DNA of 64,000 nucleotides, from contig OU015568.1 of assembly GCA_907165135.1 (NCBI GenBank), positions 10,044,001 through 10,108,000 on the forward strand, read 5' to 3'. Shown in pieces: positions 48,101-54,994 of the stretch. Positions within the stretch are counted from its first letter, which is position 1. Every line of letters begins with the position of its first letter. The notes beneath the pieces are model-generated. The model saw nothing but the letters and a program-made list of their open reading frames with translations. It was not told the origin of the DNA and did no database searches. This stretch comes from Oikopleura dioica. Lineage: Eukaryota; Animalia; Chordata. The translations under genes were made by a program, and so were the position numbers.

Positions 48101-48865
48101 ATGTTTGAGAACATTGCAACTAACGGCCTTCTTGCTGATCTTGAGACAATCGCCAATCTTCTGACTCGCGAAACTTCTCCTGGAAACAACTACTATCCTC
48201 CTCATCCATCGTCCCCTGGGTATCACTCTGCACATTCTTCTCCGGCTGCGTACTCATCTCCAGCATTTTCTCCATATCCTCCTGCAGAGATGACTCCAGT
48301 ACCACGATTCAAGATTCTCGTCTGCTCTACGCCGATCACCATTACCAAGTCGCCCTGCTTTTCTTCTCCAGAATTTGTTTCAAACTCCATCGGCTCTTCT
48401 CCTGCTTCAATTCCTTCCCCTCCGTTTCCAACTCAGTCCTTCCAAGTTAGCGATAAAAGGAAATCAAACGCTGGCAAAGCGAAGAAGAAAAAGAAAGCTC
48501 CAGTCAAGAAATCGAAATACTGCCCCTGCGCTGAATGCATCACAGCCCGTTTCGAACTAAGAATTCGGCCTAAACACTCCCGCCATCCTTGCATCATTCC
48601 CGGCTGTGAAAGCTCCTACGCTCAACCTGGCGGATTGAAAGCCCACCTCCTCAACCACGAAAGAAACGACTACGGCTTCATGAAATGCTACATCTGCAAC
48701 TCGACCGCCTTCTCCTTCCGAGATCGCCTCATCGAGCATATCCTCGATCACGAAGAGATGTCGACCGGTTTTGTCAATCCTGCTCTTCCTTTGCCTGTTT
48801 TAGATGCTTCCTTTCTTGACTCGAGTTCACCATTTGATTATGCTCTGGTTTCTTATAATCTGTAA
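48101..48865 (+). CDS. Intronless C2H2 protein with buttonhead-box-like motif and two fingers (divergent Sp-like)
   Basis: Ser/Pro-rich N-terminus, basic patch, KYCPCAEC, then HPCIIPGCESSYAQPGGLKAHLLNH (cf. Sp finger 1 H.C.I.GC...Y.....L.AHL..H) and CYICNSTAFSFRDRLIEHILDH. Confidence 0.75.
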   Translation: MFENIATNGLLADLETIANLLTRETSPGNNYYPPHPSSPGYHSAHSSPAAYSSPAFSPYPPAEMTPVPRFKILVCSTPITITKSPCFSSPEFVSNSIGSSPASIPSPPFPTQSFQVSDKRKSNAGKAKKKKKAPVKKSKYCPCAECITARFELRIRPKHSRHPCIIPGCESSYAQPGGLKAHLLNHERNDYGFMKCYICNSTAFSFRDRLIEHILDHEEMSTGFVNPALPLPVLDASFLDSSSPFDYALVSYNL

Positions 48866-50492
48866 ATAAAATTCTCATCCGACAAAACAAAGTCATCCTA
48901 ATATAATGATAAAGTTTTCTCTGAACTCTATAATGAAAATTATGCGCGAAAGGATAGCTGGGGCATTAATTATCAAAGAACGAGCCCGTGTAAAAATGAA
49001 ATTATGGCAAGTTGAAGCAGAAAGCGCCAGTTGAACTGAAAGCGGCGAGCCGCAGCAAAGTCATGGTGGTGGAGGTGGTGGCACCTTGTATCTGACCCAG
49101 CACAGATTTCAAAACTCGCAATGAAATTGATTAAGGCCCCAATCAACACCATCCACCGCCGTAGCGGGATCAGCTTCCGGTTTACCCTCACTATTGCCAA
49201 ATATGTTATGCCCCTCAAAAATCAAAATTTGCTGAGGTAAAGAAATTTCTTCTAAAATCACGAAGACGATTAAACTTAAACAACCAAGGTTCGAAGTTTA
49301 AACTTTGAACGCGAATGATTGATGCTATAATCAACACTAGATTCTAAATAGTAGTCATCTTGTTGAAGGGCTAAATAGTGGCGAGACCTTGACATGGGTT
49401 AAAGTTTATTGAATTTGATCATGATACACGTTAGAAACCGTAAGACGCGGTATTATTGTATACAGAAAATGTCACGCGCCCAATTTCATCAACAAACTCT
49501 TACCAAATAAATGTGAAAAACTCCCTCTAAAAATAATTCGGCTCCGTTTTCCCAACAGGCGCGGAGTATTAGCAGAAGCTGTCAAATCTGTCGCTTTTAA
49601 TTAGAGCCACCGGTTCAAGTCTCGTGGTGTTAAAAAAACCGAAACTCTGATTTTCTGCTCCTTTCCATTTATCGCCCTGATTGAGAGTGGGTCCATGTTT
49701 CGAATAATCTAATCAGGAGCTGCGCGGAATTGACATTGAATGTATGAAACTGACTTTTCAAATTGAAAAATGATTAGTTTCACACGGAGAAGAGTTTTGA
49801 TCAGTGATTTTAGAGCTATTATCAAGGGAAATTGATTAGAAACTTTCCTAAAAAGGCGCGCTAGAAAACAGCTAAATCTTGAAGAAGTGTAAAAGAAAAT
49901 CAAGGAGGATAAGCTGTGAACTAAAATCTTTCGTAAAAAATAATGTTTCAAAACAGAGATTGATTGTTATTGAAAACAACGTGTACTCTTTGTTCCTGCA
50001 CGTTACCGATTATTTCGTCTAAACTGACGGCAGCCATTATCGGCTCAGCCGCGCGCACGAGGGTTAACCTGCGCTCGCACCGCGTTCAACTAAACGACAA
50101 CGCAAACAACCCGTTGTCGATCTCAGCCAAAGCCGAAAATCACCACCGTGCGACCTGGAGAGCCACCGAGGTGCTCTTCGCCGAGTCCTCAAATACCACC
50201 TGTTTAAGCACAGTTAAGCATGCAAATTTAGCCCCACCTAATGCCAAGGCGCGATTCGGAGACTTCTGAATTAGACCCCAGCGAGACTGTTATTTTTTAA
50301 TACAGAAAATAATTTCAAATAACAGTTCATTTATGAGCCTTGGAGACATAAATAATGCTTGTTGGGCTCGCGAGCACTTATCAACTAGCACAAATTCATG
50401 GGGACTCCCCATTGGAGAGATACACAAGACAGGAAGTAAATGTGGTAAGCAATCGTCCTGTCGCCCTTCGCATCATAAATTATATAAGACTT

Positions 50493-50784
50493 ATGCCATC
50501 ACTTAGAGGTCCTTTCCTGACACTTTTAAAAGTATTCAAGGAGAATGCTGGTGAGGGTGGAAAACTTCCTAAGGAAGAATTGAAACAACTGATTGTAGGT
50601 TAGCAATCATAAGCTTAAAATCTTATCAACCAACGTTTCAGTGACTTTTGAATCGTCACCAATGATCGAAGCTCCGGACAAACTCTACAAGATTTTAGAT
50701 CAAAGAGAAGATGGACATATTTCTTTCAATCAGCTTCTAAATTTGCTTATTCAAAATACGACCATATGGTCTTATTACGCATGA
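50493..50784 (+). CDS. S100-like two-EF-hand protein (82 aa), most similar in pattern to S100A10
   Basis: Exons 50493-50598 and 50642-50784 (43-nt GT-AG intron, phase 1) give MPSLRGPFLTLLKVFKENAGEGGKLPKEELKQLIVVTFESSPMIEAPDKLYKILDQREDGHISFNQLLNLLIQNTTIWSYYA*. The N-terminal pseudo-EF pattern F...AG..G.L.KEELK.LI is followed by a degenerate canonical loop DQREDGHISFNQ. Confidence 0.72.
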
Positions 50785-51118
50785 TAACCTGCAATGAAAT
50801 CCTCTCTTTTAACTGCTAATAAACTCTTAATAGCCAGAGATCCTGAGCTCGAAGTGCGCGTTTAATTCATTTGCATCAATTTCAAGTTCTTCTGCTCCAC
50901 TGCCCCTAAAATGTGGCAAATAGACTCTGAGAATAAGAAATAATTATTCAAAAACGCGAATCGCAATGAAATCAATTAGATTGGTAGCAACCACTACTGA
51001 CCGCCGTGCGAGGTTCACTTCCGGAAGAGGTCAATATGACACTTGTCTTTCCAGGCAAAAGTCCAGTTTCTAACCGCCGAATCTGCGTTTTTCATGATGG
51101 CTGAACTTGCCATTTGCC

Positions 51119-51986
51119 GGTAGTAGGGATTTCCTTTTCGGCAAAAATGCCGAAAACTTCGATGGTTTTTTCTGATTTCCTTTTCGGCACTTTGCCGAAA
51201 AGCATTTCCAGTTTGAAGCCTATTTTCAAGAAAGCTTTTCGGCACAGTGCCGAAAAGGAAATCACTTTTTTGGGAAAGCTTTTCGGCTAAATGCCGAAAT
51301 GAAAATCGTAATTTTATGAATGCTTTTCGGCAAAGTGCCGAAATGAAAATCATTTTTTGGGATTAACTTTTCGGCAGACCTTTTTATTCAAATTTTCACG
51401 AAAGGCTCTTCTTTACAGTAGAAAATTTTCAAATTCACGCGTCCCCTACCTGGGGGCTCCGCCCCCTAGGTCCTAAGATGCCGGGGTCTAGTCTATGGTT
51501 ACTTAGGGTTACCTTCGGTAACCCTAACTAACCCTAGCCTATCCCCCTCGGGTGAGGTTGTTCTGTCATTTTGCCCAGTTCCCCTAACCCTAACCTTTAT
51601 TTCAGTAAAAACTATAATGCTTATTAATTCTTTCTTGGGAAATTTAAATTTTTCTTAAAATATTAATGCACCACTCTTAATTTCAAGAAGGACATACTGT
51701 CTTCTTCTTTCTAGTCTTTTGAATTCTTTGTTTAAAAAGTGCCGAAAAGCTTTTCCGAAAAACGAATGAAATAAAGTAAATTTTTTCGGCAGATCTGCCG
51801 AAAAACTTTCCCTCTAACATGAATCAATTCTGATTTCTATTTCGGCAAAGTGCCGAAAAGCTTTTCCAATAAATAGGTGAAACATGGTTATACTTTTCGG
51901 CAGTGTGCCGAAAAGTAAATCACAATTATGCCTTCAAAATGATTTTCTTTTCGGCTGCATTTGCCGAAAAGGAAATCCTTACTACG
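51119..51986. mobile_element. hAT-type MITE with repeated TTCGGCA..TGCCGAA palindromes
   Basis: TIR GTAGTA(G/A)GGATTTCCTTTTCGGCAAA. Perfect 8-bp TSD CATTTGCC at 51111-51118 and 51987-51994. More than ten internal CTTTTCGGCA/TGCCGAAAAG units. Central 51440-51600 segment has CCCTAA-like repeats. Confidence 0.85.
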
Positions 51987-53218
51987 CATTTGCCACAGAG
52001 AAGAGTTAATTTGATTTTACATGAGTTTCAATGATTTCGTCACTGGAAACGTTTCATTCGAAACTTCAGCAAATTATCAATTGCTAACGTCTGTAGCGAT
52101 GCCTCATTTTTCAGAAATAAGCATTCAGTCACAGACAGAATATAGCCACTTTTGCCAGTCCTCGTGAAATCGAATTGAACATCCTTTTGGGAGAGGTTTC
52201 GATTTGCCTGCTGTGCCAAAAACGAGTGGGTGAAAGTCAACTAGTGGTTCCCCTAATTGAGCTGTCCGCTATGCCGAAGAGTTGAATGTGAACCATTAGT
52301 GACATTATAGATCAATTATACTCATTTAGAAAAGGCCTCGACCTTGACGCTCTTAACATTATTAATTGCCGAGTGAATGCCGAAGAGTCGCTCGGTTTCT
52401 GCTGCTCTTTGCTTTCCTTTTGCGAGGCATGAAAACCGACGCCACAGAATCGCCTAATTACACTTTTGATATTACACCTAAACGGTTTCACAGCATTATC
52501 CCACCCAAAAAAACTCATTTGCGGCAGGAAAAGCCACCGCTTGAGAGAATAGCTTCCTGAAATAGTGGTCAAACTTGGATATTTTCTTTATATTTTTGAC
52601 AGCTCACCGTGGACTTTTTTATTTATCCGATCATTTATTTAAGAAAACAAAAGTCTTCGGGAATGTAAGTCGGATACAACGGGGACGTAGTTTCATATAA
52701 AATATTTTTGATTGAGTTGGCCTTTTTCACTTATTTTTAATTGAGAATCAGAACCTGGACATAATTTATTTATGTCACATAAATAACACCTCGTAGATGT
52801 CCCATGTGCGGATCTTAGGGACTGGGAAGCAACCTCCAGCAGATAGCTGTCGTCCTCATTCTTGCCTACTGTGAGAGGAGCCGTAGGAAAAATCTTAAAG
52901 TTCCCATTTGCAGAAGTCAGCGCCTGCTCAAATAAATTTGAAATGTTCACATTTGATGACAGAAGAACAGTCTAAAGTCGACCATCAAACGATCAAAGTG
53001 CAATTTGCGAAAATTTAACGGGTCGATATTATCCCCTTTGCGGTCTATCATGTTCAAGGCGGAAGCATTTAGGAAAACTCAAATCAGAAATTAATCACCT
53101 CATTAAATTATAGAATCTCCAAGGGAGAAGAACTTCATAATTCAACTTTTCCAGAGATTGGTCTTTTTTCTTTTATTTCATTTTATGATGGAAATGAAGG
53201 GACAGAAAAGGGCCAAAT

Positions 53219-53507
53219 TTACTTGGCAAGACCTTGTTCTCGAGCGAGTCGGTAGATGGAGTCATCGGATTCGCCCATTCGGCGGAGAGCTCCGCAAATG
53301 GCGAAGGTGGTGTTGGTCTTCAACATGACGCCAGTACCGGGATCGACATCGCAGAAGTTGATCTGGATAGAGGACTTGTCCTAAACAAAGCGGGTTGATA
53401 AAGGGAGTGATAAGGGTGGAGCGTACCTTGGCGCCGATGAGTCGGTTGGAGGCGGTGCACTTTCGGGGGATGTAAAGATCGACAACGCGTCCTTCGTCGT
53501 TCTGCAT
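53219..53507 (-). CDS. RPS21: 40S ribosomal protein S21 (80 aa)
   Basis: Exons 53427-53507 ([27 protein letters not shown]) and 53219-53380 (DKSSIQINF...[17 protein letters not shown]); 46-nt GT-AG intron. Confidence 0.98.
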
Positions 53508-53702
53508 TTTAATTTGTCCGAATCTGGTCTGAATTATTTTCATCAATGAGGGAATCTTGAATTGAGAGGAAAAATTGCTGAAGAAACAGTTTTTCAGAAA
53601 AAAAAGTTTGGAAATCAAGAATTCAAAAAAGAGAAATTTGATAATTTGAAATAGTCTAGTTCATTTAGAATCTTCATCATTGATCTTAAATCTTTGTTGT
53701 TT

Positions 53703-54994
53703 TCACCACCACTTTTCGTAATTGACTTCTGCCAGGTTTATCCAAGAACTGACTTCGTCGCTCATCGCTGGAGGTCCGCAGAGATACGATACTGTTTCCC
53801 TGTTGTCGAATTCTTTCACCTCTTTTTCCGATATTCTTCCCAATCTAAAAATAAGTCATCAAAACATCTAAAAAGATGGCGAACCTAAAAGAAACGCGAC
53901 GAGAATCGGCCAAGTTTCCAAGTGATTGTTGATTTGACAAAAATATTTTAATGTTGAGTTGTGGCAGACTTTCCAAGCACAAAAGCGACTCGTCTTTATA
54001 CAAAACATCGTCCCAGTGACGCCCCGAATACAGTAATGTGATGCTTTCCCAGCCATCGTCGTCGGAGGATAAATGTCTTTTAGAATTTGATGAAAATCAA
54101 AATTTTAAAAAACTACTAAAAAACGATTTCGTCAAGTAAATCGACAGTAATCTATTTTGGAATGAAAAGAGCATCAAATAAGTAAACTTTTCTATTTCAA
54201 AAATGCCCCGTAAGGACCGATTTTATCAAATTTCCTGAGCATCGAAAGAATCGGATTAATTCCAACTCCCCCGGCGATTAGCAGCAGATTCTTCTGTCCA
54301 TTCTTTCTTTTCTTCAAGAACCAATCGCCACCGACTTGAACCTAACCTTCAGGATGCAAAATTGAGCGCTCATCGTAACGATAAGGCAGGAATTTCCCAT
54401 TTCTCTAATTCACGTGTAAATCCGCGCCTCTGGTTGGCTCGTGGAAAGAACGGCGCTCTCAGGGCTGAGTCACTACTTTTTTATGATGAGTAATTTTGCG
54501 CACATGCGATGACTTCTGCTACCAGAATCGTCAGTAAACGGAGCAGAATTTTCTTCTTGACAATTTTCTTGAATTTATAACAGAGTAGAGAAAATATTAA
54601 AATCGACTTTTAAATAATGCTTTTAATTTTATCGACAGTTTGAGCATCCTTTCCGAAACTTTATCTCCAACCTCTGCTTCTTCATAAATCCACCTGACCA
54701 CCGGGTGGTGAGCCTCTCTTATTGCCAATTCCATTTCCTCATCCTTCGGCGACGAGGAAATCGAGTAACCTCCTGGATTGAGAAAATTTGGTGGAAAGAA
54801 ATCAACCCACTGGCCGGGTTGAAAGTTAAAGCGTTCGTCCCCTGTAGCCTACAATTCAACGTTCCAAAGCTTATCCTTGATCCTGCAGATCTGGCTCTAA
54901 AATGGGTCTCTGGAACATTTTCCTCGAGTGTAACTTGTTTTACCGACGATGTAAGCTGGGCGAGCCGCTTTATCCGACATCGAACTAACGACAT
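53703..54994 (-). CDS. OXNAD1: Oxidoreductase NAD-binding domain-containing protein 1
   Basis: Exons 54923-54994, 54654-54848 (FQPGQWVDFF...GGYSISSSP), 54235-54341 (VGGDWF...LLLIAGGVGINPILSMLR), 53885-54076 and 53703-53844 (YLCGPPAM...YEKWW*). Introns 54849-54922, 54342-54653 and 54077-54234 are GA-AG; 53845-53884 is GT-AG. Confidence 0.93.

Follow-up and report, generated by a model that had tools for sequence, protein, structure and literature searches.

The S100 family is represented in tunicates by four sequences from Oikopleura dioica and one from Molgula, found by Wheeler et al. 2016 (PMC5072561), and the origin of the family was placed in Olfactores in that same year. The published O. 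dioica S100s are tunA (CBY12809.1), tunB (CBY30360.1), CBY32784.1, and CBY08190.1, all four of which have a long gap in the loop of the pseudo-EF-hand (PMC5072561, supplementary alignment). Purified tunA and tunB are homodimers that bind two Ca2+ per monomer, and no tunicate S100 could be placed on the tree by those authors (PMC5072561). Against this background, we analyzed a 64,000-nt stretch of DNA from the Okinawa assembly of O. dioica (hereafter, the window) and found at 50493-50784 on the forward strand a two-exon gene that, in our judgment, likely adds a small and highly divergent paralogue, 82 aa long, to the known O. dioica S100 family. An earlier note on this DNA had proposed that a true S100 homologue here would push the origin of the family back to Olfactores; this novelty is lost, since both the O. 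dioica S100s and the Olfactores origin were published in 2016 (PMC5072561).

Read directly from the sequence, the locus is a two-exon frame of 82 codons that runs as had been claimed, with its ATG at 50493-50495, an intron at 50599-50641, and a TGA stop at 50782-50784. Coding exon 1 (50493-50598) comprises 35 codons plus 1 base and encodes Met1, helix I (FLTLLKVFK, 50514-50540), the pseudo-EF-hand loop AGEGGKLPKEE (codons 19-29, 50547-50579), and helix II. Coding exon 2 (50642-50784) encodes the hinge, helix III, an EF loop of canonical length and position (DQREDGHISFNQ, 12 residues, codons 55-66, 50698-50733), and helix IV. The intron is of the GT-AG type, 43 nt long and in phase 1 (donor GTTAGC at 50599, acceptor TTTCAG ending at 50641), and is also used by the public gene model CAG5086599.1. 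It directly follows helix II (KQLIV before the junction, V after it) and precedes the hinge, where the earlier note had put it, between the two EF-hands. The 82 codons with two EF-hands and a hinge match the small single-domain layout of the S100 family (about 80-110 aa), and an intron that divides the coding sequence of one EF-hand from that of the other matches the structure of S100 genes; in S100A7, for example, the N-terminal EF-hand is encoded by exon 2 and the C-terminal one by exon 3 (PMC2335106). An AATAAA at 50818-50823 on the same strand, 34 nt past the stop, is the sole one in 50701-51100, where the background is about one per kb, and is likely the polyadenylation signal. A search of the 64-kb window for a paralogue of the gene found none, and 49000-52000 contains no match to Rfam.

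The published O. dioica S100s, which belong to the same species complex, are the closest described proteins. They likewise carry one EF-hand on each side of the hinge, and tunA, at 81 aa, is one residue shorter than the product described here. The two proteins have a common start position, and the pseudo-EF loop is three residues short in all four published sequences, as it is in ours. Aligned with tunA from Met1 without gaps, 14 of 35 residues in exon 1 are identical, and overall identity is about 25% by eye. A common pattern, V/A-F-x-x-H/N-A-G-x4-L-x-K-x-E-L/M, extends to the published sequences, with the spacing F-x3-A-G-x4-L. Comparison by eye indicates that the gene is none of the four published sequences and is a further paralogue.

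Profile searches assign the N-terminal half to the S100 family specifically. The window and three independent marine-metagenome contigs (L001, L002, and L003) supplied four haplotypes of the gene, and exon 1 of each was matched by the Pfam S_100 model (PF01023), the profile check that the earlier note had proposed. For the window allele the score is 19.5 bits (E = 7e-4), with no other family matched; this is 2.5 bits below the gathering cut-off of 22 bits, a shortfall that we count against its reading as an S100 paralogue. The other three alleles exceed the cut-off, at 25.7 bits (L001, P0002), 25.6 bits (L003, P0014), and 22.9 bits (L002, P0013), with an E-value of 8e-6 for one of them and no competing family. 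These alleles have Ser or Thr for Pro26 and Glu for Val35 of the window. Exon 1 alone thereby carries the N-terminal pseudo-EF-hand that is specific to S100 proteins, with the profile match beginning at residue 10, in helix I. Exon 2 alone matches two generic models, EF-hand_6 at E = 5e-3 and EF-hand_1 at E = 0.016, and neither match reaches its cut-off.

Structure-based rankings place S100 proteins, rather than calmodulin-type proteins, closest to this product. When residues 31-96 of CAG5086599.1, the part of the public protein that crosses the exon junction, were searched against the PDB with phmmer, the matches included calbindin D9k (1.1e-4, 25.6 bits), S100A1 (1.9e-3, 21.7 bits), and S100A10 (1.3e-2, 19 bits), followed by troponin C (E = 0.015). 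The alignments to calbindin D9k, S100A1, and S100A10 are each a single alignment from loop 1 to helix IV that covers both halves, whereas NCS-1 (1.2e-4) was matched solely as separate short stretches. With an exon-1 allele as the query, 19 of 22 PDB hits were S100G or S100A1. In the ESM Atlas, the ten clusters nearest by features were all S_100, with a score of 0.91 and 170-176 features in common, and S100 also filled the first five places of the structural ranking. A single-sequence AF2 model of CAG5086599.1 residues 31-96, of low confidence (pLDDT 62), contains helices II, III, and IV; the top 50 Foldseek matches to it were mostly S100 chains, none at E = 1e-3 or better. That this tunicate genome encodes a protein of the S100 type, as first suggested for this locus, is thus supported by the exon 1 profile match and by the structure and Atlas rankings.

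Two vertebrate proteins invite closer comparison. Calbindin D9k (S100G), the best match among solved structures, is of similar length (75-79 aa), and the pig protein has the run LSKEELKQLI in common with an exon-1 allele. It differs in having a 14-residue first loop and two working Ca2+ sites and in being a monomer, and no orthology is implied. S100A10 (p11), to which the earlier note had drawn a special link, resembles the product in its short first loop, in a second loop without Glu at position 12, and in the local motif LDQ..DG. That link does not survive the rankings, in which S100A10 (E = 0.013) stands behind calbindin D9k and S100A1, and the short loop occurs in all four published O. dioica S100s. 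Orthology to S100A10 was accordingly rejected on its bit score, although the protein may serve as a functional analogy for a Ca2+-independent S100.

As had been noted, the first calcium loop is three residues short: 25-26 residues of the product align to 28-29 positions of the S100 profile, and in the PDB search residues 8-34 of an exon-1 allele align to residues 8-37 of S100A1. Its terminal Glu29 is retained, with Asp in one haplotype. The second loop, DQREDGHISFNQ, has Asp at positions 1 and 5, Gly at 6, and Ile at 8, but a ligand is lost to Arg at position 3 and Gln takes the place of Glu at position 12, confirming its description as degenerate; the second loops of tunA and tunB, in contrast, are canonical and end in Glu. 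In EF-hands, a change from Glu to Gln at position 12 cripples the site. Position 1 is itself polymorphic: the window has Asp there, and both L001 and L003 have Tyr (D55Y). Given Arg at 3, Gln for the bidentate Glu at 12, and Asp or Tyr at 1, the second loop is predicted to bind Ca2+ weakly or not at all, and D55Y would fit a site that is no longer used for Ca2+. Any calcium response would then depend on the first site. Calcium insensitivity had been predicted from both loops, and only the second-loop half of that argument stands, inasmuch as Arg3 and Gln12 support weak binding. The short first loop is no proof of insensitivity because tunA and tunB, with the same loop, bind two Ca2+ per monomer; as a trait of O. 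dioica S100s, it is a sign neither of kinship to S100A10 nor of calcium insensitivity.

Variation among the haplotypes leaves the gene intact. Identity to the window is 95-96% for L001 and L002, and L003 resembles L001 in length and gene layout, with codon 8 as the sole difference in the alignment of the gene. The ATG at 50493, the stop, the GT and AG of the intron, and the frame are intact in all haplotypes seen. The intron differs by a 6-nt indel and four substitutions. Coding differences fall at seven synonymous and seven non-synonymous codon positions, the latter including D55Y and F8S in helix I; across haplotypes, two of the changes in the helix I stretch are synonymous, and the third, a singleton, is non-synonymous. 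These codon changes suggest purifying selection, albeit weak.

Where translation begins determines whether the protein has its first helix, and three gene models are open. In model A, ATG 50493 is the start codon. The public annotation, model B, begins instead at an in-frame ATG at 50355, with a first exon at 50355-50444 and a 96-nt intron at 50445-50540 (GTAAGC..TTCAAG) on the forward strand; its removal deletes Met1 and helix I and leaves 30 unrelated residues in their place. Model C is a 128-aa read-through form from ATG 50355, which is open since the 96-nt stretch is in frame and free of stops, and no stop lies between 50355-50444 and ATG 50493. A search with exon 2 returned one protein, CAG5086599.1 (P0001; Oidioi.mRNA.OKI2018_I69.PAR.g11276.t1), the 96-aa product of model B on OU015568.1 of GCA_907165135.1. 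Homology favors model A: exon 1 matches S_100, a Pfam scan of CAG5086599.1 gives no S_100 match, and tunA starts at the Met equivalent to ATG 50493 (PMC5072561, supplementary alignment). We therefore expect translation from ATG 50493, collinear with tunA from Met1. An AG at 50487-50488, just 5' of this ATG, could act as a cis- or trans-splice acceptor. If ATG 50493 is the true start, the 96-aa public model is probably a mis-annotation that splices out helix I.

The opposing view, that the public annotation is correct and the locus yields a 96-aa EF-hand protein without the S100 helix I, starts from the fact that this is the deposited model. Its donor, GTAAGC, is good, its AG acceptor is usable, and its first exon (50355-50444) is in frame and does not vary among four haplotypes. 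That invariance spans 600 nt of non-coding DNA, however, and is therefore uninformative as to coding; no Pfam family was matched within 50355-50444, whose coding status we consider doubtful. The 96-aa model also removes the stretch behind the S_100 match of exon 1, has a poor ESM Atlas model (pLDDT 0.46), conflicts with the start of tunA, and shows no tie to RNA, all of which leads us to regard it as unlikely. Another view would be that the locus encodes a generic EF-hand pair that came to resemble S100 by convergence. Exon 2 matches solely generic EF-hand models, and the best genuine EF-hand proteins in a library-wide HMMER search were calmodulin-like. That search, against 1.84 billion protein representatives, returned no S100 at E = 1e-3, but a 25-bit S100 match cannot be significant in a library of such size, and so the result is uninformative; the matches listed were either generic multi-EF-hand proteins or chance resemblances, by way of VVTFESSP, to proteins of the cadherin, RTX, and HYR kinds. 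Exon 1, on the other hand, matches S_100 only, the PDB and Atlas rankings are S100-first, and tunA has the same start position and the same short loop, a trait specific to O. dioica, making convergence very improbable indeed.

It could also be asked whether the gene is still in use, that is, whether it is a decaying or silent S100 paralogue that is no longer selected and is open by chance. RNA reads covering 50150-51050 were sought in three bulk runs and one single-cell run under the same species label, and none fell on the gene, a result that is no valid test of silence because those runs were not shown to contain the lineage. Four reads matched a repeat downstream of the gene, at 90-95% likeness. 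The equal synonymous and non-synonymous counts, which include F8S and a change at position 1 of a calcium loop, could be taken as decay, as could the departure of both loops from consensus. No close orthologue was found in the protein libraries by word-index or HMMER search: in a 5.8-billion protein set, the word index returned for CAG5086599.1 only itself and ORF calls on metagenome contigs, with no spliced product beyond the genome annotation. Two JGI metagenome scans gave no match. Set against this are a frame, start, stop, and pair of splice sites that are all intact, the confinement of the only indel to the intron, and the AATAAA after the stop; moreover, the seven-to-seven ratio corresponds to a per-site rate that is about three times lower at non-synonymous sites. 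A silent copy is, on balance, improbable. A chance ORF was rejected, exon 1 hitting Pfam S_100 and exon 2 EF-hand models while the frame and splice sites are kept. Vertebrate contamination or transfer, the latter an option in the earlier note, was set aside as unlikely from the Oikopleura-type 43-nt intron, the flanking O. dioica genes on OU015568.1, and the recurrence of the locus in ocean metagenome contigs.

The DNA around the gene shows several features of its own. Upstream, some 600 nt at 49886-50490 contain about three differences between the window and the marine haplotypes, compared with about 4.5% elsewhere; this stretch lies directly 5' of the gene, carries neither an annotated gene nor a match to Rfam, and is possibly a promoter or 5' UTR. 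L001 and L002 are identical between about 48130 and 49730; the following 800 nt hold only four differences, and 50532-50676, which runs from the 3' half of exon 1 through the intron into exon 2, holds 12. The local peak of diversity could reflect balancing selection, gene conversion, or a mixture in the assembly. Further upstream, an annotated single-exon gene of 254 aa at 48101-48865 on the forward strand has no Pfam family and is also called, unbroken, at 469-1233 of L002, a Tara Oceans contig; a single 100-nt bin at 48832-48931 holds 36 differences against both L001 and L002, probably an indel or small rearrangement just 3' of this gene. Downstream, 51120-51990 looks like a foldback or MITE-like repeat of about 870 nt, with 26-nt inverted arms (51120-51145 and 51960-51985, 96% complementary). 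The palindrome TTTTCGGCA-nnn-TGCCGAAAA recurs many times within it, in part as a 44-nt tandem array at 51230-51376. On the reverse strand, 53219-54994 is annotated with a 306-aa product that combines NAD_binding_6, NAD_binding_1, and Ribosomal_S21e and may be a fused gene model.

Taken as a whole, the locus is a probable real, divergent, and mis-annotated S100 gene, a fifth or later paralogue in O. dioica. By analogy with tunA and tunB, two copies of its product would probably pair by way of helices I and IV, in the antiparallel manner of the S100 family, and a role as a small adaptor or metal-binding protein is probable on the same kind of comparison. A bolder proposal, which we rate as rather improbable, is that this S100 independently became Ca2+-independent, as did S100A10, and that its coding region is kept unusually polymorphic by balancing or diversifying selection; if true, this would hint at an extracellular or defense-type role like that of the calgranulins. 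The gene is a new member of the S100 family rather than a new discovery about it, and the published picture of the origin of the family is unchanged. S100 proteins are nonetheless still called vertebrate-specific in many papers, and an unrecognized, probably mis-annotated gene is here added to the small set of non-vertebrate S100s. Its canonical site, if naturally disabled as predicted, could help sort which of calcium switching, dimerization, and metal binding were properties of the ancestral S100.
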